DNA of 64,000 bases from Trichosphaerium sp. ATCC 40318 (Eukaryota > Protista > Tubulinea). The stretch's first letter is position 1. Each line of letters opens with the position of its first letter. The notes under the pieces are model-generated. The model saw only the letters and a list, made by a program, of their open reading frames with translations, made no database searches and was not told the DNA's origin. The stretch spans positions 1 through 64,000 of the forward strand of contig JALMLS010000474.1 of assembly GCA_038496445.1 (NCBI GenBank). The letters run 5' to 3'. Shown one piece after another: positions 7,115-45,580 of the stretch. Made by a program: the position numbers and the translations under genes.

Positions 7115-9067
7115 TTAAAGAGTGTTGTTCTTCTTTGCTTTCATGAATTTAATACGTTCCCTCAAACTGAATCCAAGATCTATCAGCACATCTTTATCAA
7201 TTTCATCAATTGTTGCACCTGCATCGTTCATCAATTCTCCAAGTTCTTGAGCTCTTTGATTTGCGATACCCAACCTCGTCAATATTGACTTCCAATCAGT
7301 TTCAACATTTAGAACTGATTGATTCTCGTGTGGTACACCGAAATGTGACTAAACAAACGTTATTAATAACAATTATTTTATAACAAGAAAGAAGTAAAGT
7401 GTAGAGATATGTACCTTGTTGGCGTTGACAGAAACATTTGGTTTATTTAGCCATGATTGTTGATTTAAAGCGCTCATATTATCCAACGACAAAGAGCTGA
7501 TTCTGGGGTCATCTTCATCAAGCGTTGTACTATGACTGTCTAGCAATAAAACGTTGTTGACAATGTCATCTTGTGGATTATCATCTGATTCGTCACACTA
7601 GAATAATGATCAGTTGTCACGTGCATTGTTAGTTGTAAAGACGTACTTTAAAATGTTGTAATTGCTTTTGTATTTCAAGGGCTTCAAGGGCATCTTGAAT
7701 CATATCTAGATGTTCGGGAGCTTCTCCGAATTTGGTGTAATCACGTTTGGGATCAATCACAGCTTTTGATAAGTACATATCTTTTGGATCTTCTTTCAAC
7801 TTTGCTTTCATTGCTTTCATATCGCTTGTAGCATCATTGCTTCTGGCTCCGGTGCTTTGCTAGATTGTGGTTATTCAAAAATTATGTTTGGTTTTGTTTT
7901 GAAATACCTCTAAACTTGTTACTTTCGCTTGGTTTGGTGGAAGAGTTGAGGTATATTTAATACGCTAAAAAAGTTTAGCAAACAAAAAGCTCACTAAAAA
8001 ATACAGCAAAATAAAATTACCAGTTGGCGATTACTAAATGTCAATTTTTGTGGTCCTGATTCACCATAATTGTTAGAGCCACCTGTGACCAATCTACAAT
8101 CATGAGATATTGCCAAGGAATGAAATCGTATATGGGCAAACTCAAGATATTTTCCAGGTAATTTTAATGGTTTGTTTGATTTGAACGAATCAATCCATTT
8201 CCCATCACCCCATCCAAACAAACAACCTTCATCATCAATAGCGAATGATGAATAATAACCAGCATGTACAGATATGATGTTATTGAGTCCTTTGACGATA
8301 CCATGGCCATACTTGCAATCAATACCCAACCCAAGACGCCCATGCGAGTTGAGTCCGAAAGAACTTACTTGTCCTGAATTGAGGAGAACAAGCACATGCT
8401 CGACACCAATGGCAATATCAATGGCATCTGAGATGCTTGAAACACGTGAAATTGTCTTTCGTTTCAAGAATAATGATTTATCTCTTGCGTCGTCGCATGT
8501 TGTTCCCCAAAGAAAGATATGACCTGTTGATGTCATTACTCCACTTATATGTCTATTAGTTTGAATTTTCTTGACATGATCTAGACCTGGAATACGTTTT
8601 GGTGAGTTTACTTTCTTTTTGTCGAATGAATGACCCAATCCATCTTGTTCATTACATCCCCAAGAGTAGACATGACCCGATTGTAATAATGCCATACTCA
8701 CCCAAAAGGCAGAGACTTTCGTGATATTGTTGAGATTTGGAACACGTGTTGGTGACGAAACAGGTGACGCAAAGTGACCCAGACCCAATTGACCTTCTGA
8801 ATTACGCCCCCATGCATACACAATACCGTTTGAATCAAGTGCAAGGCTATGAAGGGATCCAGCAGCAATACAGACGATATTTACGAGTGACTTTATTGGT
8901 CTTGCGATAGAACTCTTTTTCTCGTCTGTGTTACCCAATTGGCGGTTATCGTTTCGTCCCCATGTGTAAACGAAGCCATCGTCTGCGATTACGATAGAAT
9001 GGTTGTAACCAGTGGCCAAACGGTTAACGTATTGTAAATTAACCGACGATGTTTGAGGTTCTGCCAT
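7115..9067 (-). CDS. RCC1/BLIP-II-type beta-propeller + linker + C-terminal SAM-like domain (paralogue 1)
   Basis: Long first exon with RCC1 repeats (AAGSLHSLALDSNGIVYAWGRNSEGQLGLG). Short introns lead to a last exon DWKSILTRLGIANQRAQELGELMNDAGATIDEIDKDVLIDLGFSLRERIKFMK; stop at 7115-7117. Confidence 0.85.
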
Positions 9068-9135
9068 ACTTGTATTACGTTGAAATACAGATCAATTCAA
9101 AGCAAGTCTGTTTTTTCGGCACACGTGACTTGTAG

Positions 9136-9308
9136 TACACCGTTTACACCAATGGGAATACTATTATCTGCAGGGGCTCTTTCCGCTATTTTCTAACTTT
9201 TAACACCAACAGAGGACTAGTAGCTCAATTAACGGCTCAGCCCAAAGTGACTTTACACATGAAAACAACTCGGAAACAACCTAAGTAATACTTCTGTCAA
9301 ACGGTGTA
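9136..9308. mobile_element. Putative MITE with TA-flanked terminal inverted repeats
   Basis: GTACACCGTTT (9135-9145) and AAACGGTGTAC (9299-9309) form a perfect 11-bp inverted repeat reading TA|CACCGTTT...AAACGGTG|TA around a non-coding interior. Confidence 0.45.
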
Positions 9309-9336
9309 CATGTATTACACTAAGGGTGTACTAAAA

Positions 9337-9529
9337 TGTCGAAAAAAAAGTCGAAAAAATGTCAAAGTGATTGAACTGTTCACCACAAAGGGAGACAACT
9401 GGGTTATGGCACTCAGTCGCCGCTAGGCTCTGCCCTCCCAAATCCCCCCTGAAAGGGGGGCTTTCTAAATAGTTCCTATGACATAATATAGGATAATTAG
9501 TGTGCTGAATTTTCGACTTTTTTTTGACA
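9337..9529. repeat. About 20-bp inverted repeat enclosing a GC-rich hairpin
   Basis: TGTCGAAAAAAAAGTCGAAAA (9337-9357) versus TTTTCGACTTTTTTTTGACA (9510-9529); internal CCCCCCT-GAA-AGGGGGG hairpin at 9444-9460. Confidence 0.55.
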
Positions 9530-10062
9530 AAGTTCTACATATTTGGGTTTCCCACACTACACTAAGCACTTTTTAACAGTGGTGTATTAATGGTAATACA
9601 TTAACTGAGAAACCTATGTTCAACTACGCAATGTCTTACTGAATGATTTGTTGTGGGCATTCAAAGAATGAAAAACGCTCTCATGCATGTAAAAAGAATG
9701 AGAAGCAGGCTGTTGGACGTTTCTACGCGTAGGTATGAAAGTATACTATTTCAATTCACTGTACTTACGCCTACAAGATAAGGAGAAATATTTAATTCAC
9801 GGTGGGAAAGTTAGCGTGCTACAGTACCGCCAGCGAGGCAGAAACAAGAAACCGATTATTATGGAGCTTTGTGGCGAAAAACTACAAAACTGCTCTTCTG
9901 TTAGGAAAGAGCTTTGAGCACCAGTTAGTAAGACAGTAGTGACACTAGAGGAGTTAGATTCAAAGTTATTGTTAGCCAAAGGAATTTTGGCGAATTTTTT
10001 TCCGTTTGAGAAATTTCAGCAATTTTTACCGTTTGTTGCGCTTTATAAGCAACAGTAAACCC

Positions 10063-13006
10063 ATGATGTATCATCTACGCAATGCTTTGGTATTTTGCGT
10101 ATTTTTAGCCTTATTGCTGGGTACTCACGCTTCTGTTTATTGTTGTTTGTTGTTAACGCTTATTAGTCGCTAATGGAGCAACTCCAAACGTGTTTTTTAA
10201 TATTACAGCGTTTGGGGATATGCCTGGGCAGAACGCGGTTCATACGGTTCCAAGCGTATCTCTAGGCACATTGAACTTCCAACAGCTATACGTACTGACT
10301 TTTGAGACAAGTAAGTGATTACAGAAACCAAACTGCGTTTTATTGCTCTTTCTCGCTTTGTCACGTACTCACTACACCTCCTAGCTGTCAACCCTACTGA
10401 AGTGTTCATGGGATCTTCTTTCTTTATTACAGAGCTTTCTGGTACGTTAACAGAGCACTGCAGCAATCACATACCTTTGCTGACGTATTGGCGACTGTTA
10501 TAGGTTTACTAGCTGAATCTAGCACTTATGGAGGTATGTTCATAAGATACGCCACGGATATGGTTATTCCCGAGTTTGATGGTGATGAATTTCCTGTTTT
10601 TTACTACTCAACATTATCATCAAAGTGGACATACCAATTTGCATACTTTGATTCAACTGTGCGTGCTTTTAAACGTTTTTATGTGTTTTTTTTTTTTTTT
10701 GAAACGAACTTGTGGTTGCATTCTCGGATGCTTGTTATTGGGTTCCGTCTAACTTTATGTTTGTGATAGATGTTGCAATTAAATACTACAAAGTACGAGT
10801 TTGATTTCACAACTAGTGCAGGAAAATTCAATGCATTTCAAGGCACGTGATTTTCATTAAAAAGACCCCAAAAACTGTTAAAACTTTGAGACTCATTGGA
10901 TACTCAATAGATGGTGATGGCTTTCTTGTGTATGTACTCACTGCCAGTACAAGTGTTTTGTATTCTGTTCCGATGCATCAACCACCTGTCCAGACATTTA
11001 ATGGTAACACTATTGATCCTGTTTTATTCTCAATCTGTGACTTTAGTGAGTGAAACCAATTTTCCTTCACAAGTGTCCTCCCTTGTACAAGTTGAACCAG
11101 GGTGCTTCGTTCAAGCAACATTCCCCGATACTAATGACCTCACCATGCACTTCTATACAAACAACTCCAGAGTACGATTGTAAACCGCATTTTTTGTTGA
11201 AGATAGTTCTGAACAGTTATTAATTGGATATTTTCGTTTAGCCATTCTCAGAAGCAGCATCAACATCTGGAGAGCCATTGCCTGGACTTGATATAGCTTT
11301 CAACAGTGAAACAAATCGTATATACACTGTTGTTAATACTAGTCCTGATAATACAGAAGAAATACAATCATACACATGTTTGAGTGACTTTAATACTGAA
11401 TCTATTGGAATGGTATCTACAGAGTTGATTAATCGCAAAGTTGTAGATGTAGGAAATTCAGCAGATTCACAATTTGTTCATATCGGGGAATTCGATACCG
11501 ATGGTATCCTTGTCTTTAGGAAAACGGATATTGATAAACCAACAATTACTGTTGGGACAAAGGTGATTACCAGAGTTGACGCTGTATTTAGTACAGATGA
11601 ATGTCGATTGATTGTTATTGTTGAAGATGATTCAACTACTGTAAACATGGCTGTTATTGATGCATCCTCTGGTATTTTCACTTGTACTTGTACGTACTTT
11701 GTTTAGACATGTACTTGATTCATTTTATCTAATGTTTTGTTTACAGTACCACCTACAACAGCTCCACCGACAACAGAAGCGCCTACGGCTCCGCCGACCA
11801 CAGCTGCACCAACCACAGCTCCACCAACCACAACTCCACCAACCACAGCTGCACCAACCACAGCTCCACCAACTACAGCTCCACCAACCACAACTCCACC
11901 AACCACAACTCCACCAACTACAACTCCACCAACAACAGCTTCACCAACAACTGAAGTACCTACTTTTCAAGAACCTACTACTGCTCCTCCACCAACATTT
12001 GCACCATCGTGCTCATCAGAAGCTAATGTACGTTACTCAAATTTATAAGGATAGGATGACTCATGCTAACATTCTTGTTTTTCCTAGATTCAACCACGAT
12101 TGGATTGTGTCATAATGAATGGACCAAGTAATTACACAGCTATTCTTGGATGGGATACTACTGTACGTTACCATGTTAAACAAGTGTACCGCTTACCAAG
12201 AGGTAGTTGTTGTCAGTTGAAATCTGTTATGGATCAAATAATATGATTACACCAACACCTTCAGATATATCAATTGTACCTATATTGTTTGAAGGAAGTG
12301 CAGCATTCTTTCCTTCAACAGAACCTCTCAGGTATAATTTCGATGGTCAAGCTTCATCTTGGACACTAGGTACTGGTGTCGTATCTTTCTCAAGTGATAG
12401 TCCAGTGTGTGACACAGATGGTGCGGATCAGAGCTAAGAGACACGCAATCCTTTTGATGTTTTGTATTTAGAGGTTACAATTGATTTTAAGCTAAATGAA
12501 CCGTTCCCTATTCCTGATAATACTCTATCAGAGATAGGAAACGAAATTGCCCAATCGTTGAATATTAGTGCTAGTAACCTTACCGTTAGTCAGAAACCTA
12601 CACCAGGTTCTAAGAGACAAACAAGTACAACTGTTTCTGTAACTATTGCAGGTTAGTTCTTTTTGTTTTTGAAGTTGAAGTCTTATTGACTTTCGTATTA
12701 GGAGGTACTGATAACAGTGCTGCAACTACTGTTGCTACATTTTTGGAAGATGAAACAGCTGTACAAAATGCAATAGACTCACTTGCAACAAACTTAAATG
12801 TGCAGGTTTCTGTACGTATTTGAATGTTGTTTTAGCACTGCCTTACAATTGACTAACTTTTTTTTTCAATATAGGCTGTTACTATTGCTGAACCTCCTAC
12901 TGTCACACGTGCTATTGATACTGATGCTGATGCACCAAGTGCATCTTATAGATTACAATTTCCTTTCATGCTTGCTTTAGTTATCATATTGTATAGCTTC
13001 GCTTGA
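10063..13006 (+). CDS. Secreted/surface glycoprotein with Pro/Thr mucin-like stalk and hydrophobic C-terminus (GPI/TM anchor)
   Basis: Signal peptide MMYHLRNALVFCVFLALLL, beta-rich exons, PPTTA repeats and terminal FPFMLALVIILYSFA*. Multiple introns, including one GC-AG. Confidence 0.7.
11750..11951 (+). repeat. 15-bp coding tandem repeat (PPTTA/PPTTT)
   Basis: About 13 units of CCACCAACCACA(G/A)CT. Confidence 0.9.
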
Positions 13007-13560
13007 TTTGTTAAAACATACATAAATAAAGAGCAAACTACAATGTTATTAACTATAACTTGTAATATGCCAAGTTCCAACAATAATGACTCTGTGGGAT
13101 TGAACAAATCTAATTTATTGATAGTTGTGTTTACAGCTTCTGGCTTTGTATTTCTATGTTATTTGTTTCTTCCAAGGTGTTTTATTGACAAGAATGAGAG
13201 TTGCTGAGGCTTTATACAAAAGAGTGACTACATCAATTAACTTTTAAACTTTGTCCTTTGATGCTAAGTTATGACCACCTGCAACCATTGTTTAGAACCT
13301 AATGCTTGTATTCTCCTTCTAGGTTAACATTCATACCTTTGTATTCTTGTTCTTATTTATCATTACATAATAACATGCTCTTCGGTATGACAAAAGGATA
13401 ACAACGGAGCATAAATATTGGTGAAAATGGCTACTTGAATCAAAAGATAGCGTTTTATTGACGTAAGAAGAACGGCCGTGAATAAACTCAAGAAAAACTG
13501 TTAATACTGTCCCCAGAATTATTTATTATCACTCTTGGTAATTGTTAATTAACAAATCAA

Positions 13561-15471
13561 TCATGTTTGATTACAAAGCACTTGATCCACTATCCCAGAC
13601 TTAGAAACTATGAAATAATGTTAGAAGATAGCAGTACTTTTGTGATTATAATTTGCGACTTACTCTTTTCAAGGAATGCATCTCCAAGCTTTGCACTACA
13701 CCCAAATTGCTTTTCACGTGTAACAAGCTTTTCTTTGCTTTGACTATCAAACAAAGGATTGACAATGAGACAGTTTATGAACAAAAACAATTGATTCTTA
13801 ATCTAGAAAAAAAATCACCTGACAAAAAAGAACATCAACTAAAACAAACCTGTGACACTTTTATCTTTGAAGATGGATCTATCCTTTCCTTGATGATAGG
13901 TATCAAGTATTTTACTATAGCTTTTGATACATGGTTAACATGTGTTCCACCATATGTAGTACGATTCAGGTTTGCAAAGGAAATATGATGGAAAACACCT
14001 GTGGTGTTTAAGGCAACACATACCTCCCATCTTTAGAAACAGTCAACACTTTTTGTAAGCAACAAGTTACCTTTTTCTTCCATCCTTCATGATAACTTCA
14101 GGGCCATAGAAAGCTTTACATTTGTGAGCGCTTTGTGTAAAGAGTCTGGCATAGTCAGCAAATGAATCAAACATAATCTCTTTTCCATTCAAGAAAACAC
14201 TGAGCTCTGAGTTGCATCCTAGTACGTCTTACTCAAACAATTCTGTGTAGCTAGTAAAATTACATACCTGCCACTTCATATACCCTAGACTTTAATATCT
14301 TTACATGATCAGCATCAAGTCCTTGGATATTGAAACGTTTGTAATCAGGTTTGAATGTAACTTTAGTGTAAGATTCTGTGCAAATTGTAATTTCAGGAAT
14401 AGTCCTATCAGCCATATTGTTCATAAAAGTTTGCTTAAATTTCCGACTTTTTGAAGTGTCCGCAGTTTCTATGGTAAATTCTGAACTACGTTGATACATG
14501 AGTATACAAACCGCTGTTAAAAAAAAACAAACAAAAAAATTTGAAAATCTTTTTGAAACATCAAGTACACGTGATGCATATTGACGAAAAAAATCCTTAT
14601 AATTCTTGTTACTACTATTGTACCTGAATATATTTGTAAGTTTTGCGCCCAGACCATGATGCCCATCTACTGAGATGTAAATTTTTTGAGATTACCAAAT
14701 GAAACAATTACAAAGAGATTCAACATTATTTTGACAAAAACTTGGTACCAGTGCCATCGAAATTTCCGCCTGTGCCCATTTTCCCAAAGATAAGTTCTGG
14801 TATATACATATTAAGTTCTCTATGCATCACAACAGGAATTCCTCAAGGTAGTGTCAAAACAAATTTAAACATTTTTGGCTATATTTTCTTTAAAAATAGT
14901 TATGTCCTTCTCCTTACCTTTGCCGTCATTCCAAATTGATATTGAAGACGTTTCTTCGTTTATTGTAACTCTAATACTTTTCACAGTATCATCACGCAGA
15001 TGATGCTCAGCTGCGTTTAAAAGAACTTCATCAAAAATCTTAATTAAACCAGGTACAAATGTAACTTTTGTTAGTTCTCCTCTAAGGGTAAAAACACAAG
15101 GTGTCAGCACAATATCAAGGTAAACATAACAAGCCCAACCAATTAAGTTACAAAAAAAGAGACCACGTGTTGAACCGTTTTCTGCGATAAAAAAAGGCGC
15201 CAAAGCCTGGTTCTCAGAAAGAGCGTAATTTGCGTTGGTTTGAAAAAGTACGACCTTGCGAAGTGGTATTTGATGGAATTATTGAACTACAGTACGTACT
15301 GTATGTTTGTGTTATCTATATCGTCTACTAGCCATAATTTATCTTCTCTTAGAGTCGTAGAGCCTTTAAAACGTTATAGTCGAGTATGTTCTGTTTTCTG
15401 TTACCTATGTACATATCCGGTCTGTGCAGCACATGCTCACGAAGATCCATCTTTGCATAACCACTTGACAT
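13561..15471 (-). CDS. Stand-alone topoisomerase II N-terminal module (GHKL ATPase + transducer), without TOPRIM or cleavage domains
   Basis: Nine exons splice in frame: MSSGYAKMDLREHVLHRPDMYIGS...FVPGLIKIFDEVLLNAAE...IWNDGKGIPV...YIPELIFG...GLGAKLTNIFS...YTKVTFKPD...RWEVCVA...GGTHVNHV...NCLIVNPLFDSQSKE...KSGIVDQVLCNQT*. TGA at 13561-13563. Confidence 0.85.
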
Positions 15472-22179: not shown

Positions 22180-24152
22180 ATGGCGAAACCACAATCTTCG
22201 TCGGCTAATTTACAATATGTTAACCGTTTGGCCACTGGTTGGGCACATTCAATGGTAATCGCAGACGATGGCTTTGTTTACACATGGGGACGAAACGATA
22301 ACCGCCAATTGGGTAACACAGACGAAAAAAAGAGTTCTATCGCAAGACCAATAAAGTCACTTGTAAATATCGTCTGTATTGCTGCTGGATACGAATATAA
22401 CCTTGCAGTTGATTCAAACAGTATTGTGTATGCATGGGGATATAATTCAGAAGGTCAATTGGGTCTGGGTCACTTTGCGTCACCTGTTTCGTCACCAACA
22501 CGTGTTCCAAATCTCAACAATATCACGAAAGTCTCTGCCTTTTTAGTGAGTATGGCGTTATCAAAATCAGGTCGTGTTTATTCTTGGGGAAGCAACTTCT
22601 TTCAAGGATTGGGTCATTCATTCGACAAGTGGAACATTTCATCACCAGCGGTTATTCCAAATCTTCAAAATGTTCAAAAAATTCAAACTAATGAGCATGT
22701 AAGTGGAGCAATGACATCAAGCGGTCATGTCTTGCTTTGGGGAACAACTAAAGATAAAGCACATGATAAATCATTATTCTTGAAACGAAAGACAATTTCA
22801 CGTGTTCCAAGTATTGATGATGCCACTGATATTGCCATTGGTCAGTCTCATGTGCTTGTTCTCCTCAAGTCAGGACAAGTATTTTCTTTTGGACGTGACT
22901 GGCAAGGGCCTCTTGGGTTGGGTATTGATCGCGAGTATGGCCAGGGTATCATCAAAGGACTCAATAACATTGAATCTGTCCATGCTGGTCTTTGGTCATC
23001 ATTTGCAATTGATGATGAAGGTTGTTTGTTTGGTTGGGGTCAAGGGAAATGGATTGATTCGTTCTGGACAAACAAACCATTAAAATTACCTGGAAAATAT
23101 CTTGAGTTTGCCAATAAACGAGATCATTACTTGGCAATATCTCATGATTGTAGATTGGTTACAGGTGGCTCTAACGATTATGGTGAATCAGAACCACAAA
23201 AATTGACATTCAACAATCAGTATTTTACAGTCGACACTCAACAATTGGATGAACGGCCAATCAACAAGTCATCAATCAAAGTTCATCCATCTGAAGAGAC
23301 GTACATTTCAAAAAAGGCCATTCGAGATGTACCTCAGAAGTTTGGACAAACAAAACAAGATCTTCAGATTCTCGAAAATGCACGTCATCGCATTCAATCC
23401 AAACAGCAAAGTAAGTGTTAAGTCCACTATTCTCAAGTTTTATAACTCTTTATACTTTAAAGGACAAGAAGACTCTATTGATTCAATCAACTACAACCCA
23501 TCCGCCAATGAATCAAATCAACGTCCACCTTTAAATGAAGCTGATGATCTTGTATCAAGACAATCATGGCTTCAAGATGAGTTTGAAACAATCAACCTTG
23601 GCAACGTACAACCAAAATATTATTTCATTCAAAATATTCTCTATTTATTTATTTACGTCAATGTTAAGGATGCTTCTTCCGATGCAATAGGAGCCAAATC
23701 AACCTCTTGGCACTTCAAAGGCGATTCATCTATCAAGAACCCTTCTCAACCTTCCGTTGATGTAGATGACCTTGTTTCGCAACAGTCCTGGAAGAACAAT
23801 GTTGAATCAATTAATATTGATAAGAGAAATGTATCAATGCCAGTTGTACCTGAAACAGTAGACGTTGGCAAAGTACGACTCTTTCTCTCGGAAGCGATAC
23901 ATCACCTAACTTTTATTGCAGCCTTCACCATCAGCTCCAATTGTACCAGAACAACCGTTGAGAGGGAAAGTTGAATGGGTGAATATCTTGATTTTGGCAG
24001 GGATTGATAGATCAAGAGCTCAAACACTTGGATCAATGTTGGATGAAGCATGTATTGAGATACAAGAGTTAAAAGGAGAAATTATGAAAGTGTTTGATTT
24101 TACAGCAATTGAGCGTGCAAAAGTTATCAAGTATAAAAAAGACCATTGTTAA
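22180..24152 (+). CDS. RCC1/BLIP-II-type beta-propeller + linker + SAM-like domain (paralogue 2)
   Basis: RCC1 repeats; linker with a duplicated DDLVS(R/Q)QSW motif; last exon EWVNILILAGIDRSRAQTLGSMLDEACIEIQELKGEIMKVFDFTAIERAKVIK. Confidence 0.85.
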
Positions 24153-25929: not shown

Positions 25930-27684
25930 CTAGTATCGTAATATCTCAAATGCATCAGTTAATTCTTTGATACCTGTGTCACTTGCTATTGTTCCCCAGG
26001 ACAAGTGAATAGTATGTACACCTGAGAGCGCCTTTAACCCCTCCTTTGTTATTGATGAACATTCTAACAAACATATTTCATGCACACCAGCCAATGCCTT
26101 CAATCCTTCATCTGTTATTAATTCACATCCTGACAAGTAGATAGTGCGCACACCAGCCAACACCTTCAATCCTTCATCTGTTACAGACACACACTTGCTC
26201 AAAACAATATGATGTACACCTGCCAACGCCTTCAAGCCTTCATCTGTTATCAATTTACACCCACATAATCTAATAGTGTATACACCTACTAGTGCTTTCA
26301 AACCTTCATCTGATATCGGTTGACACCCATTCAAACTGATGGTGTGTACGCCTATCAACATCTTTAAACCTTCATCTGTTACGTTTGTAGATGACAAATT
26401 AATATCATGTACACCTTCCAATGCTGCAATGCCCTCATCTGTTATTGACTTACAACCATACAAGTTGATGGTATGTACGCCTGCCAATGCTTTCAAACCT
26501 TCGTCTGATATGTTTGTTTGTCTTAAATTGATTGTGTGTACACCAGCCAACGCCTTCAAACCTTCATCTGTTATCGATGAACACTTTTTCAAATCAATAG
26601 TGTGTACACCTGCCAAAGCCTTCAAACCTTCATCCGTTATTGAGGAACATAAACTCAATTTGATAGTGTGTACTCCTGCCAGTGTCTTCAAACCGTCATC
26701 TGTTACATTTATATATGTTAAATCAATCTTATGTACACCTGTCAATGCTTTGAAACTATTGCCTGATAATGATTCACAACCATACAACTCAATAGTATGT
26801 ACACCTGCCAACGGCTTCAAACCTTCATCTGATATAGATTCACAACCACACAACCTGATTATATTTACACCCGTCAATGCCTTCAAACCTTGATCTGTTA
26901 CCTTTGTATACGATAAGTCAATCTCATGCACACCTGCCAATGCTGCAATGCCCTCATCTGTTATTGATTTACAACCATACAACATTATTGTATGTGCACC
27001 TGCCAATGCTTTAATACCCTTATCTGTGATAAGTTTGCAACCACTTAGGCTGATAATGTGTACACCTGCCAAGGACTTGATACCCTTATCTGTAATAAGC
27101 TTACAAAAATACAGGTCAATAGTGTGCACACCCGCCAATGCCTTCAAACCTTCATCTGTTACGTTTACATGTGATAAGTCAATCTCATGTACGCCTGCCA
27201 ATGTCACAATACCATCATTTGTTATTAGTTCACAATCATTCAATCGGATGGTGTGTACACCTGCCAACGTCTTAATGCCCTCATCTGTTATTGATTGACA
27301 TCCACCCAAGCTGATAGTGTGTACTCCCGCTAGCACCTTCAAATATTCATCTGTTACCTTGGTATATGCCAGGTCAATACTATGTACACCTGTCAATGCC
27401 TTTATAGTGTCATTTGTAATTGATTTATAAAAGCGCATGTCAATGGTTGTATTCTGGAGCAAAGGACTGCCATAAAGCATCTTAACTTCGTTTTCTCTTT
27501 TAATATTGATAGAACCGTATCCAACGTGGTGGTGAACAACATCTCGCAAAAAGTGGCACGTTTGGGCTGTACGGAGTGCATGCATATTTGTCCCTTGTTT
27601 GAGAATATAGACTATTAATTCAATTGGTAAGGCAACCAAGTCGATTACGTTCTCAGTAGCTGTTTTTGAGTCTTTTCCTTCCAT
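25930..27684 (-). CDS. F-box-like + LRR protein (intronless)
   Basis: 584-aa ORF with LVALPIELIVYILK and more than 20 LAGVHTIxL repeats. Confidence 0.88.
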   Translation of the reverse strand: MEGKDSKTATENVIDLVALPIELIVYILKQGTNMHALRTAQTCHFLRDVVHHHVGYGSINIKRENEVKMLYGSPLLQNTTIDMRFYKSITNDTIKALTGVHSIDLAYTKVTDEYLKVLAGVHTISLGGCQSITDEGIKTLAGVHTIRLNDCELITNDGIVTLAGVHEIDLSHVNVTDEGLKALAGVHTIDLYFCKLITDKGIKSLAGVHIISLSGCKLITDKGIKALAGAHTIMLYGCKSITDEGIAALAGVHEIDLSYTKVTDQGLKALTGVNIIRLCGCESISDEGLKPLAGVHTIELYGCESLSGNSFKALTGVHKIDLTYINVTDDGLKTLAGVHTIKLSLCSSITDEGLKALAGVHTIDLKKCSSITDEGLKALAGVHTINLRQTNISDEGLKALAGVHTINLYGCKSITDEGIAALEGVHDINLSSTNVTDEGLKMLIGVHTISLNGCQPISDEGLKALVGVYTIRLCGCKLITDEGLKALAGVHHIVLSKCVSVTDEGLKVLAGVRTIYLSGCELITDEGLKALAGVHEICLLECSSITKEGLKALSGVHTIHLSWGTIASDTGIKELTDAFEILRY

Positions 27685-31170: not shown

Positions 31171-31447
31171 AAATGTCAGTAAATAAACAAAAGTACTTGT
31201 CATCGATTTGTTTATTCTCGCTGTTTCTGTAGTCAACACGTTCCACCAATGATTTCCTTCTTCTGAGTTCCTATGCACACAGTCCTGAGGGTGCGAAGTT
31301 TTACCTTATCGCTAGGCCTCTGCAACAAAGCCAATAAGATGTCTGCTACGCTTCATCCAACGCTTCTGGTCGATTTATTTGGAAACCAGTACTTGCCTTA
31401 AATACGACGTTAAGACGGGTCAAAGCAAACAGAAAAAGAAAAACAAA

Positions 31448-32149
31448 ATGTCTTCGAACAGGTTTATGAAGGTAATACTACTAGGTGATTCTGGTGTAGG
31501 TAAAACCAGGCTCCTCATGCAGTTTACAAACGAAACATTTACAAAATCAAATGAAGGATCGATGTATCCTGATTTTAAGATGAGAAACTTGAAGCTACCA
31601 GATGATAGTTACGTAAGAATACAAGTATGGGATACTTCAGGACAAGAAAAGTTTCACCGTTTAGCACGTTCTTTCTATAATGGACCACACTGTTGTATAC
31701 TTGTTTATGATATTTGTAACGCTAATTCTTTCCACTCTTTAAAAAAATGGAGAAGTTCTTTTCTTGATAAAGCGACGCATATAAACAAGGATACATTCCC
31801 TTTTATTGTTGTTGGTAATAAACTAGATAAAAAAAGCTTAAGAGTAATAACACGTGATGAGGCTATCACGTGGTGTAGAGATAATGGAGATTTACACTAT
31901 TTCGAGACATCAGCTGCTAAAGATGAAGATGTTGATGCTGTTTTTGACTTTATCTCTCAAATGCCTGTTCAAGAGGTTTACGTTGATGAAGAGGATATGG
32001 AAACGAAGAACTCGTCCTCTACTGGTTCTATCACAACGCGCACTGGTGGAACATCACATGTGATATTATCTGATGCGACAACTGATTCTGAGACGGCGCT
32101 ACTATTACCACCTAAAAAAAAGTCGAAAAAAAAAGGATGTTGTTGTTAA
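31448..32149 (+). CDS. Divergent Rab7-like small GTPase (intronless)
   Basis: GDSGVGKT, WDTSGQE, FPFIVVGNKLD, YFETSAA and a C-terminal GCCC prenylation motif. Confidence 0.85.
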   Translation: MSSNRFMKVILLGDSGVGKTRLLMQFTNETFTKSNEGSMYPDFKMRNLKLPDDSYVRIQVWDTSGQEKFHRLARSFYNGPHCCILVYDICNANSFHSLKKWRSSFLDKATHINKDTFPFIVVGNKLDKKSLRVITRDEAITWCRDNGDLHYFETSAAKDEDVDAVFDFISQMPVQEVYVDEEDMETKNSSSTGSITTRTGGTSHVILSDATTDSETALLLPPKKKSKKKGCCC

Positions 32150-36919: not shown

Positions 36920-39900
36920 ATGGCATCTCAGTTATTTCTACAGCTATTTACGTTAATAGTCACATCACATGCGATTAATCTTGTTGGTGTAGATAGTACG
37001 TTCCCTATTATACTCTAAACTAAGCGTAATATTACAAATAAATGCGATATCGTATTTCTAAAAATCCATTTTTTTTGTTTAGTGCCTAGTTTCACAGGCG
37101 AAGGACGAAATCCTCAGTTACCTTCATCAGGAAGAAGCGGTGCTACTCTTATATACTATGGTGGTGCTCCTTTTTATAATGACGGTACATAAAAAAGGCT
37201 ATGTCAATAGTTAACATAACCTTGTTTACCGCTTAACTTTTTTCAGGTATATCTCAATACAGACAAGCGATAAGTGGAAACCCTCTTCCTGGGTCAAGAG
37301 CTATATCTAATGCGTAAGATTTTGATATGTTGCGCGTACCATTCCGGTGTAATTTGGTTCTGAAAAAAAGATCACGTGATTTTCTGATACAACTTGAAAA
37401 GTGAAGAGTTTTTTTTTTTTCCTTATTCGTTTTTTTTTGTTGTGTGGTCGCTTATCTTGACTTTTTCTTCGTAGTGTATTCGGTAGACAACCAGAAGGTC
37501 GTGGTATGACTAAAGCTTTGGATCATGACTCAGACGCCAATCTACTATCAGTTTATTTTGGTCAACTTCTAGATCACATATCCAACATTTTAATGAACAA
37601 AACACATTCTTGTTTCACCAAGATCTACAATTGTAGTTTTCAACAAATCCTGTTTGTTTTCAACTTTCACGTGAAATTATTCCTTGACTTTCTCACGATA
37701 TAACTCTCACACATGAGAATCCAAGCGAGAGTGTTCCTTTTCCTATACCTACAGGTAAATACTTGATATCTTTGATTCTGTCATAAAGAGGTTTATTCAA
37801 CTGTGGTCTTATTTGTAAACGATAGGAGATACGTATATGGATCCACTCAACGAAGGAAATAAAGAACATCCATTCTCAAGATCAGCTTTCCTTTCAGGAT
37901 CAGGTACAACCCAAGTATTTTTTTACTTTGCTCAACTTTACTCCTTAGGAGTTACCAGTCCGCGACAACATGCCAACGCTATTACTGCATGGATAGATGC
38001 CTCATTTGTGCGTACTATTGATCTAATTAGCTGAGTATTAAATCACGAGTATGTGACTAATGATGATTGATAGGTTTATGGTAGTGATGACGACACATGG
38101 ATGAAACTCAGAGAGTACAACCCAAATGAAGGGTTTCTTAAAATGGGTATTGATGTACCAGGAGATGGTTCACTCCTACCGTTCAATTTCCATAATGATA
38201 CAAACAGCTCTTTGAGTATGGTTGATAACTTTTTGTAAGTCCGAGACTTTCAGCTTTGTTATTGTCACTGTTTGCTTAATGGTTGGCATTAGCCCACCTC
38301 AAACAGAAGATGAGTATCTTTTCGCAGCTGGAGATTTGCGAGCAAATGAGAATGTTGCTTTGGTATCTCTTCAGACGCTTTTCTATAGAGAACATAACCG
38401 ATATGTTCAGAGTAAGCACCTTTCCAAAAATACACTTCTAAATATCACCTTTTTTTTGGTTCTCCTTCTTATTTATTTCTCTTTTAGCTCTTGTTGACGA
38501 AGGTGTTGTTACTGATCCTGATGAAAGATTTAATATGGCTCGTCTATGGGTTGGCGCATTAATGCAGGTACATAGTGACACGATACATAGCACGGTTTTT
38601 CCGTTAACAACATTTTTGTAGAGTATAACTTTCGGCGAATACTTGCCCATGCTCTTTGGCGAAGATTTTGCTCCCTACTCTGGTTATGATGGTACATGTA
38701 GTAGCGATATTAGCGCATCATTCAGGTACTTGTTATTAAACTAAAATACAGCATTTTATAACTATTCAAATAGCACTGCTGCGTTCAGATATGGTCATAG
38801 CCAAATCAATGGATTAATTCCTAGAATGAACAGCGATAAGCTTCCACATGAGCAAGGTGATAGATTTGTTTTGTTGTGGTTATTCTTATGCTCTGTGATA
38901 GGATCTATGCTTCTTAGAGAATCTTTTGGGTATACTCAAGGTGTTACAGCAGCTGGAATTGGCGTTATCCTTAGAGGTTGCGCTTGGTCAAAAATGGTTT
39001 GTTGGTTTTGATATACTTCTATTTCTTTTGGCCACAATTGATTTATGCTTGGATTTAGGAGCGTACAGATGGTCTTGCAGTTGCTGATTTACGTAATTTC
39101 TTGTTTGCTCATGCTCCTGGCGCAATAGGACAAGATTTAATATCAAGAAATATTGAAGTACGTCAGAAGCAGTATGAATTTTTTCACAATGATTAATTTG
39201 CTTAAAGAGAGGTCGAGACCATGGGTTGATGAGCTATGTGCAAGCTAAATTACATTTCTCAGGGGTAACTATCAATGACTTTACTGATATAACTGGTGAG
39301 ACAAGCTCAATATTTTTTATTTTACACGTGATTTAAACGTGATAAAAACACTACAACAAGCAATACTTTTTCTAATTTGTTTTTTTTTTTTGAAGATAAT
39401 GCTGAAGAGGTGCAAATACTTCGTGATTTATATGAGACTGTTGAAGATGTTGACTTGTTTGTTGGTATGCTACTAGAGCCTATAACAAGGGGGTATGTAT
39501 CAACAACTTAAAAGCTATCTGACTTCTTCTTAGTACTGTCGGCCAACTCATTTTTGATATCATCACGGAACAGATGACAAGAATACGAAAAGCGGATTGG
39601 TAAGTGCTTTTTTTGGTGATTTTTTTTTCCGTATCCAAGCCTTTATCACAGTTGGGTTTAATACGCTTTGAGAAGAAAAAAAAGGAAAAAAAAAGAAAAT
39701 TTTTCTAGCAACATAAACAAGCAGAAAGACAAGTTCTGATGTTGCTAATGACATGCTTTATTGTATTAATGAATGTTGATACTTATCTTTTACTTAGGTA
39801 CTGGTTTGAGAACACCCAAAATACTATCTTCAGCCCTGAAGAAGTAAATGAAATACGACAAACAAAACTACGTGATATTATTATGAGAAACACTGAGATG

Positions 39901-40931
39901 AGCGTTTCTTCATTCCCTGGACAAGCTTTTGAAGTAACAGCAGCTCAAAGTACTTACAACAAAATACAAAAAAACCTAAACACGTGAAAATCACGTGGTA
40001 CAACATACGTACAGTGTTTAACTTTGTTATAGTTGGTCAACCTCAACTAAGTGGCGATCCTCATTTTACTGGCTTTTTATCACAAAAATGTACGTGTCAC
40101 GTGTTGTGATTCAACATGTTGATATACGTGTGGTATATTCATATTTTATATTTAGTTGACTTTCATGGTATTGCTAGAAGGCACTTTAACTTGATTTCTG
40201 ATGAAGACTTCCAATTAAATTCGTTGTTTCTTGAAGCTGAGTTGAGACCTAAAAAAGTGAATAAAACATACAATGGCGCTCTTGCTTTTCAGTGTGGTAA
40301 GCTCATACGCGGTCTACTATGAATATTAATCACATGCCATCTAAAGGACAAGACAAACTACTTATTGCTTGTAACAGAGCTGCAGGAACACGTGAAATCT
40401 TCTTCAACGACAAACCAAGTAAGGGCGTTGAGCACAAAGTTCAAAGATACTTACTTCTTTCTCTTTAGTCGAAGATGCTACAGATTTGAAGTTCTGTAGA
40501 GGAGCAAAGAAGATGGCTATTGGTGATATCCATACCAAAGACAATAAGAAAGTTTCTATTACTCTGGATAGATACAAATTCAATGTTCGTTTCAGCAGTT
40601 CAAAGCATAGTACGTTGTTATATTTTTTTTGTTAGAATTTACAGTTGACATTGTCAGGTTCTTGCCACATCAATTTTCGATCAAAGTACACTTGGGGTGA
40701 CTACCCAATACCACATGGTGTTCTAGGAAATACAGCAAATAAGAAAAGAACAACACCACTCACATCAAATGGTCGTCAAGTACGTACCATTAATTAAAAA
40801 AAAAAAACACAAGAAATCTGACTTTTTTTTTTCGCAACTAGGGAGAAGGTATACTTCAAGGTTCTATGATGGACTATTTTGTAAAAGATGGTTTATGGGG
40901 CAAAGACTTCAAATACAATAACTTTAAATAA
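36920..40931 (+). CDS. Secreted peroxidase-cyclooxygenase-superfamily heme peroxidase fused to a C-terminal GDPH (vWD-like) domain
   Basis: FGQLLDH|DITLT, AGDLRANEN, FYREHNR, TAAFRYGHSQ, RGRDHG, VDLFVGML; then LSGDPHFTGF...FDFHG...HGVLG; more than 20 introns. Confidence 0.85.
37578..37696 (+). other. AT-AC U12-type (minor spliceosome) intron
   Basis: 5' ATATCC, branch site TTCCTTGAC (37680-37688), 3' AC. Removal restores the distal-His motif GQLLDH-DITLT in frame. Confidence 0.85.
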
Positions 40932-41351
40932 AAATAAAAAAAAGCCAATGTAGAAGAGAGTACAGTAATAAAAAATAAGAATAAAAAAAGATATGCATCG
41001 TCAGATCTAGGTTTTTTGCTTTTATGTACGACTATCAAAACTCCTGGTTTATTAGATATTACTACACACTACAATTATCTTGCTCAAAAGGTCTTAGCTG
41101 AACATTATCTTATTTTGTAGGTAACGTACCAATACAAAACTGGGCCAGTATAAGTTTTTATGATGGTTGGAGCACGTGCTAAATAGTGGAAATAGTAAAC
41201 GTTTCCAGGCCCTTTAAGGTAGACTGACTTTCAGTAGCGCCTTAGCCGGATATCAAAACGAAAAGTAAGACCTCTGCTTTAGGTCATCAATATTACACGT
41301 GTTAAATTGTTTGGCTTCACTTTACATTAAACAAAGACGTCGGTCGATATT

Positions 41352-42296
41352 ATGCTTTCTACCTCAAAAAGGTCTAAAATTACCAGTACTACCAGCACAA
41401 GTTTGCTAGACCTACCGTCAGAGATATTAGCGCACATCCTGCGTCAAACAACAAAATCACGCTTTGCGGCTTGTCAAACCTGTCGTTTACTTGCTTCTAT
41501 TGTTCATGACATTATTGGATACCATGCTATTATGATTAGAACATTAACTCAAGCAAAATCAGCTGCGAAACATTTTGGTGTTCTGAAATACACAAGAATA
41601 TCCCTTGGAGATATGCAGTCTGCAGGAGTTTTTACAATTGACGTTGAAGTAACTGATGAGTGCGTCAAAGCACTTGCTGGAGTAAATACTATTGACCTTA
41701 GTTTCACTTTAGTAACAGATGAGGGTGTTAAAGCACTTGCTGGTGCCCATATTATTGGCCTTATTGGCACTTCAGTAACAGATGAGGGTGTCAAAGCACT
41801 TGCTGGTGTCCATACTATTTATCTTAGTGGCACTTCAGTAACAGATGAGGGTGTCAAAGCACTTGCTGGTGTCCATACTATTGGCCTTAGTGGCACTTCG
41901 GTAACTGATGAAGGTGTCAAAGCACTTGCTGGTGCCCATACTATTGACCTTAGTGGCACTTCAGTAACAGATGAAGGTGTTAAAGTACTTGCTGGTGCCC
42001 ATACTATTGACCTTAGTGGCACTTCGGTAACTGACGAAGGTGTCAAAGCACTTGCTGGTGCCCATACTATTGACCTTAGTGGCACTTCAGTAACAGATGA
42101 AGGTGTTGTAGCACTTGCTGGTGCCCATACTATTGACCTTAGTGGCACTTCAGTAACTGACGAAGGTGTTAAAGTACTTGCTGGTGTCCATACTATTGAC
42201 CTTAGTAACACTAAAGTAACTGTTGAAGGCATCAAAGCACTCAACGGTACTAAAGAAGGGGTTACAACTGTAAAGGAAACTAAAGTGTATATGTAA
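41352..42296 (+). CDS. F-box + LRR protein (intronless)
   Basis: LLDLPSEILAHILR followed by about 9 copies of ALAG(A/V)HTIDLSGTSVTDEGVK. Confidence 0.88.
   Translation: MLSTSKRSKITSTTSTSLLDLPSEILAHILRQTTKSRFAACQTCRLLASIVHDIIGYHAIMIRTLTQAKSAAKHFGVLKYTRISLGDMQSAGVFTIDVEVTDECVKALAGVNTIDLSFTLVTDEGVKALAGAHIIGLIGTSVTDEGVKALAGVHTIYLSGTSVTDEGVKALAGVHTIGLSGTSVTDEGVKALAGAHTIDLSGTSVTDEGVKVLAGAHTIDLSGTSVTDEGVKALAGAHTIDLSGTSVTDEGVVALAGAHTIDLSGTSVTDEGVKVLAGVHTIDLSNTKVTVEGIKALNGTKEGVTTVKETKVYM
41650..42240 (+). repeat. Near-perfect 63-bp coding tandem repeat
   Basis: Unit approximately AAAGCACTTGCTGGTGCCCATACTATTGACCTTAGTGGCACTTCAGTAACAGATGAAGGTGTC. Confidence 0.9.
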
Positions 42297-42403
42297 GGCA
42301 ACTTTTACAGGACACAATAAAGAAAAGGTGATTGCTAGTTATGCCACCAAAGTCACTTGTCACATTGTAGTATGTCAGCTCCTCATAATTTAAAAATTAT
42401 ACA

Positions 42404-43107
42404 CTAACACTCAAGCTCAGCACTTTCAGATAGATATTCACCTTGTGTTGGTAGACCAGCGTTAAAGCTAGTAGTAATAAAGTCGGTAAATAAATATGGA
42501 GTTGTACTTTGGACTGTTCTGAGAAAAAGTTCTCGTGTGATAGAACAATAAGTAGTAGGGGCGATAAGGATATTTATTGTAAACAAATGAATATCGTATC
42601 AAGCTAACAAAGGAATATACCAGCGGCACAAAAGCTCTAAAAAAAAAAAAGAAAAAAATTAGAATTGGTTGAGTTGTTCTCATAACGCACCTCGCAAATT
42701 ACCTTCATGCCTGTGTACAGCTTTATTGGAGTGTTGAAGCCATCGTAGTAGCTAGTAATTGCTGTAGAGTCGATATAGAACGGAGGTTTATTGTCCCACG
42801 TGCATGTATAGTTGTAGGGTTTATCACTACCTTTGTTAAATACCTTTACTATCAGCATGTTGTCCAGAGTATCAAAACGCATCACTGCTGTCCCTTGATC
42901 TGCTATACATTGAGGATAAGCAGTTAAATCGCATGCAGGTCTAGCAACATCGTAAAGCTTCTGGCAAGAAGATAAAACGTCATCGTCAGTGATATTTTTT
43001 TGGTAGGAGGAGAGTTTGTATTCAATGTAAGCGTAGATGGTGTTATACTGAGTTTGAGATATTGTAATGTACGCAAGTACTGTTACAACAAGCAGTAGCT
43101 TCTCCAT
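42404..43107 (-). CDS. Small secreted protein of unknown function (2 exons)
   Basis: Signal peptide MEKLLLVVTVLAYITIS; the long ORF is followed by an intron and an exon ending ESAELEC*. Confidence 0.55.
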
Positions 43108-43815
43108 GGTGCGTGTTTGAAGAGAATGAATTAAGTCTACAGAAATGTTTTAAGATTGGCAGTGGTTAGTCACGTGCTATGGTAATAGCAACGTTTAAGA
43201 TGAAAAGAAGATGTTTAGTAGGTGGCCTCAGATTTATTTCGTTGAAAAGGTGGATAGGAACTGAGATCCCTAATACGTTTTTTTTCAAATTGGTTAGTAC
43301 TTAAAGTACTTACAACAACGCTGCTAAAAGAGGTTACTTCCAACTGCCCCTTTCCATCTTATCAAAAATATGCCGATGGAGAACAGCGAACAAACACGCA
43401 TTTCTTTCAAACAGCGAGTCACAAAAAATTCTGTTCTAAATGATATTGTGGAGTGCATGTTAAAACACGACAAATTTAACCTGAGAATTGTAGTAACAGA
43501 ATGTGAGCATAGTAATTTACAATGATACTCGGATCACTAGTGTTGTTAGAGTTACAAAGTATTTTCAACGCTAGTGGCTACGACATCTACTTGATAACCA
43601 TCAGTTTAATGAGTTAGGGGCGGTTGTGGTCCGGCTAAGAAACTCAGCATCAAAGTCTGCTATTGGCAGCCGTTTAAAAATATGAGCTTTTGTTGGGATT
43701 GTACCATGGCAACACATGCTTCTTTTAAGTTACTATGGCTTTGAACTTCGTTTATGTTCGAGTCAGCTAAAGTAGTTACTGCCCAATTGTTGTAGTATTA
43801 CTAACATACACGTTT

Positions 43816-45580
43816 ATGGCTGAGCTGCAAAATTCGTCGGTTAATTTACAATACGTTAACCGTTTGGCCACCGGTTACGCACATTCAATGGTAATCGCAG
43901 ACGATGGCTTTGTTTACACGTGGGGACTAAACGATTACCGCCAATTGGGTAACACAGACGAAAAAAAGAGTTCTATCGCAAGACCAATAAAGTCACTCGT
44001 AAATATCGTCTGTATTGCTGCTGGATGCTTTCATAGCCTTGCACTTGATTCAAACGGTATTGTGTATGCATGGGGGCGTAATTCAGAAGGTCAATTGGGT
44101 CTGGGTCACTTTGCGTCACCTGTTTCGTCACCAACACGTGTTCCAAATCTCAACAATATCACGAAAGTCTCTGCCTTTTTTGTGAGTATGGCATTATCAA
44201 AATCAGGTCATGTCTACTCTTGGGGAGACAACAGAAATCAAGGATTGGGTCATTCATTCGACAAGCCAGAAGTTTCATCACCAGCGGTTATTCCAAATCT
44301 TCAAAATGTTCAAAAAATTCAAACTAATGAGCATGTAAGTGGAGCAATGACATCAACAGGTCATGTCTTTCTTTGGGGAACAGCAAAAGGTTGTATCTGG
44401 GGACCAAAAGAAGGCAAAGCGATAGATATATCACTATTCTTGAAACGAAAGACAATTTCACGTGTTCCAAGTATTGATGATGCCACTGATATTACCATTG
44501 GTGATGAGCATGTACTTGTTCTCCTCAAGTCAGGACAAGTATTTTCTTTCGGATACAACTACAGTGGGCGTCTTGGGTTGGGTATTGATGACAAGTATGG
44601 CCAGGGTATCATCAAAGGACTCAATAACATCATATCTGTACATGCTGGTGAGTATACATCATTTGCGATTGATGATGAAGGTTGTTTGTTTGGTTGGGGT
44701 AAAGGGAAATGGATTGATTCGTTCAAATCAAACAAACCATTAAAATTACCTGGAAAATATCTTGAGTTTGCCAATAAATCATATCATTACTTGGCAATAT
44801 CTCATGACTTTAAATTGGTCGCAGGTGGACGTGATAATTATGGTCAATCAACACCACAAAAGTTAACATTCACCAATTATCAAAAGGTACTTGAAATCTT
44901 ATTTGTCTTTCTTTTGTCTGACAATCTACAAGTACTTTAAAACAGCCAATAAAGTAATCACAAAAGAGAAAAATGATGATGCTGTGAAAGCAATGAATGC
45001 AGAGTTAAAAGAAGACAGAAAAGATAAGTACTTGTCAAAAGCCGTGGTTGATCCCAATCGTGATTACACCAAGTTTGGAGATGATCCTGAACATCTTGAT
45101 ATCATTCAAGATGCCCTTGAAGCCTTTAAAATACAAAATCAAGATGAATACATCAACAATGTAAGTATCAGAAAACAAGCAATACCTATCTCACATGGTA
45201 TTTAGGTTAACAATCCTCGCTTGCCACTTGATGTAGACACCTCAATTTTATCTGAACAATCATGGAATGACAAGCCTCATGTTTCAGTCGCTCACACAAA
45301 GGTGTCTTGTTTTAATTTTATTTTCTTCATATTTAATTGTATTTAGTCGGAGTTCTGTCCACCTCAAGAGAATCAATCAATCGCTGCTCCCAAATTTGAT
45401 TGGCAATCAACTTTGGTGAGGTTGGGTATTTCAAGTAAAAGAGCACAAGAACTTGGATCGTTGATGAACAAAGCAGCCATCATAAAAAGTGAAATCAACC
45501 CTGAAGTGTTAAAAGAGCTTGGATTCAATGTGATTGAGCGTATAAAAGTCATAAAAGCACAGGAAAACAAAATGCTATAA
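43816..45580 (+). CDS. RCC1/BLIP-II-type beta-propeller + linker + SAM-like domain (paralogue 3)
   Basis: RCC1 repeats; linker KAMNAELKEDRKDKYLSKAVVDPNRDYTKFG shared with paralogue 1; last exon DWQSTLVRLGISSKRAQELGSLMNKAAII...LKELGFNVIERIKVIK. Confidence 0.85.

Follow-up and report, generated by a model that had tools for sequence, protein, structure and literature searches.

The window analysed here is a 64,000-nucleotide stretch of the genome of Trichosphaerium sp. ATCC 40318 (contig JALMLS010000474.1, positions 1 to 64,000 of the forward strand). Trichosphaerium is a marine amoeba belonging to the Amoebozoa. The window is eukaryotic in character, with a GC content of 36–40% and sparse open reading frames (ORFs), and contains three paralogous genes, copies A, B and C, at 7115-9067 on the minus strand and at 22180-24152 and 43816-45580 on the plus strand. 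Each copy begins with a long, intron-free exon 1 that encodes an RCC1-type propeller and ends with an exon that encodes a tail with a predicted SAM fold. The propeller exons share a nearly invariant framework and differ strongly at a limited set of codons. We propose, with a probability of roughly 65%, that the three genes belong to a germline family of binding propellers with SAM-fold tails, diversified by gene conversion and selection. The features of the three copies are as follows.

7115..8020, minus strand: remainder of copy A, comprising introns, linker exons and a final exon for the predicted class 1 SAM-fold tail (coding 7118-7348, stop codon 7115-7117), located by tblastn searches using copy C exons 2 and 4; splice sites putative
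8021..9067, minus strand: copy A exon 1, RCC1 propeller of 349 codons without an intron (Pfam RLD, E 4.9e-71); end placed by homology to copy C, beside a GT donor
8615..8977, minus strand: copy A patch that differs from the version on contig C40 and contains all 21 exon-1 mismatches; probable ectopic gene-conversion tract
22180..23410, plus strand: copy B exon 1, RCC1 propeller at 22180-23217 (Pfam RLD, E about 1e-56), continuing in frame into a different linker up to a putative GTAAGT donor
23922..24152, plus strand: copy B last exon, predicted class 3 SAM-fold tail, differing from the tails of copies A and C at about every second base; acceptor putative
43816..44886, plus strand: copy C exon 1, seven-bladed RCC1 propeller of 357 codons (Pfam RLD, E 2.4e-61; AlphaFold2 model)
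44026..44031, plus strand: hypervariable slot, codons 71-72, x-x of the blade 2 G-x-x-H turn (CF in C, YE in B, SL in A), with 7–13 residues among 29 copies; aligns with UVR8 W285/R286
43876-43881, 44329-44334, 44503-44508, 44650-44655 and 44779-44784, plus strand: other G-x-x-H slots of copy C
44077..44094, plus strand: hypervariable slot, codons 88-93, blade 2 WG-x-N-x-x-G-x loop; the residue after WG aligns with UVR8 W302
43927-43941, 44227-44241 and 44554-44565, plus strand: equivalent WG loops of copy C
44079..44179 in copy C, plus strand: framework tract of about 101 nucleotides identical in copies A, B and C, synonymous sites included (DNA alignment, run lengths)
44887..44932, plus strand: copy C intron 1, 46 nucleotides, GT..AG (spliced contig, run X1)
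44933..45160, plus strand: copy C exon 2, linker with a conserved KFGD...D-A-L-E motif (spliced contigs; motif also present in Trichosphaerium transcript P0121)
45161..45205, plus strand: copy C intron 2, 45 nucleotides, GT..AG (spliced contig, run X2)
45206..45301, plus strand: copy C exon 3, linker with a Q-S-W motif (spliced contigs and homology)
45302..45346, plus strand: copy C intron 3, 45 nucleotides, GT..AG (spliced contigs, runs X1, X2 and X4)
45347..45580, plus strand: copy C exon 4, predicted SAM-fold tail (helices in residues 19-73 of the 77 encoded) and stop codon (AlphaFold2 model)

Gene structure and the family in the genome

The original prediction, made from the nucleotide sequence without database searches, placed three RCC1-propeller paralogues at these positions, and Pfam searches agree. 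Exon 1 of each copy matches the RCC1-like domain PF25390 with E-values of about 1e-56 to 5e-71 and scores of 193–240 bits, compared with the curated cut-off of 150, and four to five RCC1 repeats (PF00415) were detected. Copy C is composed of four exons of 1071, 228, 96 and 234 nucleotides, a total of 542 codons. Its three GT..AG joints are supported by contigs from three public sequencing runs belonging to two studies, out of four runs compared with copy C, and members of the family are thus transcribed and spliced. The introns supported by RNA are those of copy C; the splice sites of copies A and B are putative, ab initio enumeration of splice paths having given too many solutions. Fold and database searches were made exon by exon. 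The linker exons had no match in Pfam or the Atlas, and the exons encode just the propeller, linker and tail, with no NACHT or NB-ARC NTPase found by Pfam. Copies A, B and C are not assembly artefacts, since each has unique flanks, a different linker and a different tail.

A six-frame search of the whole genome produced 88 matches, about 55 of which are full length and 58–86% identical to copy C at the protein level. The Trichosphaerium sp. genome thus contains a family of at least 55 full-length propeller genes, to which the three intron-containing genes of the window belong, in addition to a dozen or so fragments and frameshifted copies. The genes are clustered on contigs C104, C168, C226, C171, C446 and C546, and C168, the contig of the window, carries nine copies. 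Fifty loci were retrieved for analysis, and 46 full-length exon-1 sequences, all 46 with an open frame, were aligned by codons; they include a close subset of 29 copies and a divergent subset of 16. Frameshifted or fragmentary propeller exons occur within the clusters at C168:121259-122318, C168:134867-135924, C104:60243-61281 and C104:93414-94447, among others. These broken copies may have been left behind by gene birth and death, and conversion could possibly draw on them as donors.

Two members are more divergent. The one at C104:203246-205218 (L051) is 40% identical to copy C, has an acidic linker and the same tail, and is represented by a complete ORF in the MMETSP transcriptome; it lies about 3 kb upstream of the family copy at C104:208127-209164. 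The second, at C171:26036-27043 (L052), is 51% identical to L051. L051 may be a conserved founder of the family. The MMETSP peptide P0122, a complete ORF of 596 residues with RCC1 followed by the tail, matches contig C104 at 92–100% across exons. A word-index protein search for relatives in other organisms returned generic RCC1 proteins with at most 40% identity; this blank is weak evidence, because the same search missed the genome's own divergent member P0122. No close relatives were found among IMG/VR viral contigs and JGI metagenomes. The paper describing the Trichosphaerium sp. draft genome mentions neither RCC1 nor an expansion of gene families (PMC10521059).

Variable positions of the propeller

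The AlphaFold2 model of exon 1 of copy C is a seven-bladed RCC1 propeller with a predicted local distance difference test score (pLDDT) of 90.4 and a predicted template modelling score of 0.89. The best structural match of the model is UVR8 (template modelling score 0.83), and RPGR, HERC2 and RCC1 were also matched, the scores ranging from 0.76 to 0.83. Sequence identity to solved RCC1 structures is just 18–23%. An eight-residue insertion in the blade-4 loop of copy C (codons 191-198, 44386-44409) is absent from copies A and B, which indicates that the variable loops differ in length too; the confidence of the model falls to a pLDDT of 61 at residues 191-200.

Variation in exon 1 is concentrated in few positions. 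Among the 29 close copies, 43 alignment columns hold 5–13 different residues and 261 hold one or two. When copies A, B and C are compared in pairs, 29–35 codons per pair have two or more differing bases, compared with an expected 12–18, and none of 2000 permutations reached the observed values. Codons in which all three bases differ number 8–13 per pair, compared with fewer than one in the permutations. The same pairs share identical DNA runs of up to 101–150 nucleotides. A tract of about 95 nucleotides that had been predicted to be identical in all three copies even at synonymous sites measures about 101 nucleotides. Every amino acid swap named in the original prediction was found in the alignment: YN/WA/YA, SL/YE/CF, VE/QS/DE and YY/LW/EY in G-x-x-H turns, CNEQD/SNFFQ/DNRNQ and LNSH/RDWQ/YNYS in WG-x-N-x-x-G loops, and F-W/L/F, HIRF/NKRD/NKSY and WG-D/Q/K. 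The description of two variable loop positions per blade was accurate and incomplete, as both are present together with a third variable stretch at the end of the long WG loop, directly before the next strand.

Each blade is built from four strands in series, and the loops connecting them alternate between the faces of the propeller. Therefore, the G-x-x-H turn, which connects strands 1 and 2, and the WG-x-N-x-x-G loop, which connects strands 3 and 4, share a face. Forty of the 45 variable residues of copy C are in the loops between strands 1 and 2 and between strands 3 and 4, compared with 1 of 58 residues in the loops of the opposite face (Fisher test, 3e-7). In the pairwise alignment with UVR8, the x-x positions of G-x-x-H correspond to W233/R234 and W285/R286, and the residue after WG corresponds to W250 and W302, all of which lie at the UVR8 dimer interface (PMC7455749). 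Strand topology and homology to UVR8 thus place the variable sites of the modelled propeller on one face, in agreement with what had been anticipated. Given the hypervariability of this face, it is unlikely that the family has the conserved Ran interface of RCC1 proper.

Non-synonymous divergence (dN) exceeds synonymous divergence (dS) at the variable sites, as the original prediction implied. Among the 29 close copies, the 43 hypervariable codons have a dN of 0.69 and a dS of 0.32, and the 261 framework codons have a dN of 0.019 and a dS of 0.10. The circularity of picking sites by their variability is avoided by two independent site definitions. Sites defined on the 16 divergent copies and measured in the 29 close ones gave a hypervariable dN of 0.38 compared with a framework dS of 0.086, and motif slots chosen a priori had a dN of 0.58 compared with a dS of 0.11 at all other codons. 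Tree-based counting identified 31 sites that exceed the neutral non-synonymous expectation after Bonferroni correction, all of them in the variable loops, and the site ratio was below 0.5 at 220 of 347 sites. At the variable positions, Tyr, Asp, Lys, Arg, Glu and Cys are abundant whereas Gly, Pro, Ala, Val and Ile are scarce, and 60% of the hypervariable codons have A at position 2. The same sites are variable in both subfamilies. Differences between variable codons are rich in transversions, involve all base pairs and affect all three codon positions.

Nothing in the data suggests a process resembling a diversity-generating retroelement (DGR) or a deaminase. The substitutions are not adenine-specific, A being retained at 60% of second positions, so the DGR-like spectrum that the original prediction proposed to look for was not seen. 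A DGR combines a reverse transcriptase with an adjacent template repeat. No reverse transcriptase is present among the ten scanned ORFs of at least 150 residues in the window, three of which are LRR or F-box-LRR and one a Ras-family GTPase, and no template repeat was noticed; the variable targets are at least 55 dispersed genes.

The tail module and the concerted evolution of exon 1

The tails of the family fall into three classes, between which about half of the bases are different. The framework of exon 1 does not follow this division, as its distance is 0.063 within tail classes and 0.061 between them, and some gene pairs are 1% apart in the exon-1 framework and 50% apart in the tail. Tails of class 1 differ from one another by a dS of 0.73 and tails of different classes by about 1.8, at a tail dN/dS of 0.33–0.55, compared with an exon-1 framework dS of 0.10 in the same genes. 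Precisely at the ATG, mean pairwise identity climbs from about 0.25 to about 0.9, and it declines again where exon 1 ends. The near-invariant framework is thus a product of concerted evolution confined to exon 1 and not of simple constraint. This is the main mechanistic point, which the original prediction missed. The exchange takes place in register between paralogues, because the blades within a gene are dissimilar at the DNA level, with only one 36-nucleotide pair reaching 75% identity.

The young duplicates L006 and L013, the flanks of which are 98.0% and 98.8% identical, differ at 26 of the 43 variable and 15 of the 261 framework codons. Two related duplicate pairs with a downstream kilobase 98.7–99.1% identical differ at 33 and 35 of the 43 variable codons. 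Hypervariable codons of young duplicates thus change about twenty times faster than the flanks. Of the differing slots in these pairs, 10 of 13, 16 of 17 and 14 of 15 have at least one allele that recurs base for base in another copy. Across the family, 60% of slot alleles occur in more than one copy, and the other 40% are private. Sharing of slot alleles amounts to 5.3%, compared with 3.5% expected by chance, and the slots are unlinked, the correlation of sharing at neighbouring slots being about 0.04. Where a slot allele is shared, the distance of the flanking framework is 0.022, compared with 0.036 otherwise.

A candidate conversion event is visible in copy A. Positions 1-11039 of the window are colinear with G000:C40:345249-356269, at the end of contig C40, with 97% identity and patchy divergence; this is probably a second haplotype or an unmerged overlap. 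In exon 1 of copy A, all 21 mismatches to the C40 version lie in 8615-8977, and there are none in the 585 bases of 8030-8614. The mismatches include multi-base swaps at hypervariable codons, and the patch is a probable ectopic gene-conversion tract. Further divergent patches between the window and C40 were observed at 3500-4500, 7001-7500 and 6001-6500, the last of which reaches the 5' end of an LRR gene.

The original prediction of a SAM-like tail holds for the predicted fold and not for the sequence. The AlphaFold2 model of exon 4 of copy C has an overall pLDDT of 86.5, with values above 90 over residues 19-75. Its best structural match is the SHD2 domain of Sla1 (3idw; VIA-align Z 9.7, root-mean-square deviation 1.5 Å over 61 residues), and the next 13 matches, with Z of 4.9–6.7, are all SAM domains, including those of Tric1, Shank, ASK3, Anks3, BICC1, tankyrase and Scm. 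The tail is therefore predicted to have a five-helix SAM fold. At the sequence level, no Pfam family was matched at threshold, with one of 28 tails reaching SAM_4 at E 0.052; the tail profile had no SAM match among PDB sequences, and comparison with the Atlas gave weak leads only.

The tail module is also used outside the propeller family. A search of 1.84 billion representative proteins with the tail profile retrieved two proteins only, P0122 and P0121, the latter a transcriptome peptide of Trichosphaerium sp. ATCC 40318 that lacks a propeller, ends in the tail module and matches contig C11 at 97–98%. The tail follows EH domains (Pfam E 2e-20) in one 304-residue ORF (L059:223-1134, minus strand, from G000:C326) and also occurs at L057 (C364). 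In unverified gene models, three further ORFs have the linker-plus-tail module downstream of them: one is F-box-LRR, one is SPRY-like (weak, E 4e-4) and one matches GRAM weakly (E 8e-4), at loci L058 (G000:C50:30700-35500), L061 (C146) and L060 (C7). In our reading, the module is a unit of general use for docking or oligomerisation.

LRR_6 and F-box-LRR genes adjoin every RCC1 copy of the window, at 4963-6243 (minus strand), 25930-27684 (minus strand) and 41352-42296 (plus strand). The adjacency is probably due to chance, because F-box-LRR genes form a very large family scattered over the genome (241 matches from 2920 first-look candidates). An ORF of a Ras-family small GTPase (Pfam E 6e-43) lies between copies B and C at 31379-32149 on the plus strand.

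Proposed mechanism, alternatives and related systems

Based on the gene structures, the propeller model and the comparison of copies, we propose the following scenario. Each protein consists of a seven-bladed RCC1 propeller encoded by exon 1 and a C-terminal domain with a predicted SAM fold, joined by a linker that is short and conserved. The propeller would serve as a binding scaffold, in which about 40 residues of the G-x-x-H turn and the WG-x-N-x-x-G loop vary on one face. Frequent short-tract ectopic gene conversion would keep the framework of exon 1 nearly identical, synonymous sites included, and would at the same time reshuffle the hypervariable slot alleles among copies, while point mutation supplies new alleles. 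Selection for diversity would stop the slots from being homogenised. The SAM-fold tail would be a docking or oligomerising module that other genes of the genome employ as well. A combination of short-tract ectopic conversion, selection for diversity and new alleles arising by point mutation fits the pattern of exon 1.

Several points weigh against this scenario. The placement of variable sites on one face derives from topology and homology to UVR8, not from measured distances. The dN/dS ratio is confounded and overstates the case, because gene conversion lowers the local dS; the hypervariable dN of 0.69 about equals the tail dS of 0.73, and an excess over the neutral expectation is therefore unproven by rate alone. 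The assembly contains no exact donor for the copy A tract, the best other match being 94% identical. Because of this missing donor and the private slot alleles, conversion from copies in the assembly cannot explain everything. The RNA-like contigs are 90–99% identical to copy C and therefore attest expression at the level of the family and not of copy C itself. The presence of the tail with EH domains and after F-box-LRR and SPRY-like frames fits a general docking module over an immune signalling domain, and the use of the module outside the propeller family weakens the idea of a dedicated immune-signalling tail. We infer that the variable face binds variable ligands, such as non-self, pathogen or allorecognition targets, and the same is true of the role of the tail. 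The original prediction of a cytosolic receptor family with polymerising tails is thus supported in part: the variation it described was confirmed, and the proteins may be receptors, may be cytosolic and may polymerise through their tails.

A possible, though tentative, alternative is that the proteins are not surveillance receptors but variable endocytic or phagocytic adaptors, or allorecognition determinants that distinguish self from non-self at fusion, like the fungal het genes. The similarity of the tail to the SAM domain of the endocytic adaptor Sla1 and its presence in one ORF with EH domains point to an adaptor, although a common fold does not imply a common function. Allorecognition would suit an organism that is multinucleate (PMC10521059), and the closest evolutionary parallel of the family is the fungal HNWD allorecognition family (PMC1805685). 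This alternative touches the nature of the ligand but not the mechanism of diversification.

It is unlikely that the loops are merely unconstrained and have drifted neutrally over the true, old age of the family, with conversion erasing divergence of the framework only. The closeness of the hypervariable dN to tail synonymous divergence is what such drift predicts, as the ratio measured against the real age of the family could approach 1. However, the slots are just 15–25 codons apart, so conversion tracts would copy the loops along with the framework, and keeping the slots diverse therefore needs selection. The composition of the variable codons is far from neutral, with the excess of A at position 2 and the enrichment of Tyr, Asp, Lys, Arg and Glu; the aligned full-length copies of exon 1 are all open; and duplicates with 1–2% flank divergence already differ at 60% or more of their hypervariable codons. 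Four observations argue for selection for diversity: the diversity persists despite homogenisation, residue usage is skewed, both subfamilies vary at the same sites, and divergence between young duplicates is fast.

A stronger version of the conversion scenario is quite unlikely, namely that the short-tract conversion of exon 1 is a dedicated combinatorial system that shuffles about 20 slot alleles among at least 55 genes and the fragments, possibly during the life of the amoeba, and so generates an adaptive-like repertoire. Such a system may be set against conversion that is a by-product of homology. Very unlikely is a dedicated, possibly somatic, mutator or cassette-copying system resembling DGRs, AID or variable lymphocyte receptors, of which the genome would be a snapshot: the slots resemble near-independent draws, 40% of their alleles are private, the hypervariable codons of young duplicates outpace their flanks about twenty-fold and the organism is multinucleate, but the scanned ORFs lack a reverse transcriptase and no template repeat was noticed, the transversion-rich changes are neither adenine-specific nor deaminase-like, about 55 separate loci, each with its own flanks, are resolved in the assembly, and many alleles have exact counterparts in other copies, which is what ordinary conversion would produce.

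The preferred reading of a germline family of binding propellers resembles an inherited set of custom binding proteins that is kept diverse by copying short stretches between copies. If it is true, the family would be a clear natural case of conversion homogenising a scaffold while reshuffling binding residues. The RCC1 scaffold with its mapped variable positions could serve binder design. In animals, plants and fungi, hypervariable binding domains that form inherited repertoires are known from LRR, WD40, ankyrin, TPR and immunoglobulin folds. In the papers searched, which linked RCC1 to hypervariability, amoebae or SAM, we found no such family described, none on the RCC1 fold and none in Amoebozoa; one apparent match was discarded because its RCC numbers were strain codes of a culture collection. 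Should the variable face bind foreign or non-self targets, the family would be an independent invention of a recognition repertoire. Trichosphaerium is already noted for heavy gene traffic with giant viruses.

Parts of the family have counterparts in known systems. The central NTPase of NLR and STAND receptors is absent from the Trichosphaerium exons. The tail shares its predicted five-helix fold with SAM domains such as Sla1 SHD2, but has no sequence-level match to a SAM family. BLIP-II (1jtd, 3qhy; Foldseek E 4e-14 with the model) is an RCC1-type propeller that binds foreign proteins tightly through loops of one face, but it is bacterial, secreted, encoded by a single gene, shorter in its blades and not hypervariable. 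UVR8 (4dnw, 4d9s), the best structural match, builds its interface from the G-x-x-H positions and the residue after WG; it is a single conserved photoreceptor with tryptophans where the Trichosphaerium family is hypervariable. Mammalian HERC5 and HERC6 offer a case of positive selection on the RCC1-like domain of an antiviral protein (PMC6002735). The resemblance lies in the selected RCC1-like propeller of a defence protein, whereas for the HERC proteins single orthologues were compared between species, selection falls mostly in blade 1 and the propeller is attached to a HECT ligase, and the Trichosphaerium family comprises at least 55 paralogues in one genome, variable in all blades on one face and without HECT.

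The closest likeness is to the fungal HNWD/NWD genes, including het-d and het-e. The WD40 repeats of HNWD proteins undergo concerted evolution both inside a locus and from locus to locus, and diversifying selection acts on four codons of each repeat, which lie on the interaction face (Paoletti, Saupe and Clave 2007, PMC1805685). The Trichosphaerium family differs from them in that it is built on RCC1 rather than WD40, lacks NACHT/STAND, has blades fixed at seven, carries a SAM-fold tail and belongs to Amoebozoa. Fungal genes of this type contain near-identical repeats, which the Trichosphaerium genes lack, and exchange in Trichosphaerium would take place between paralogues in register and not between repeats. 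Both are multigene families of β-propellers in which loci exchange sequence and evolve in concert, while diversifying selection acts on a small number of codons in each blade, grouped on the interaction face.

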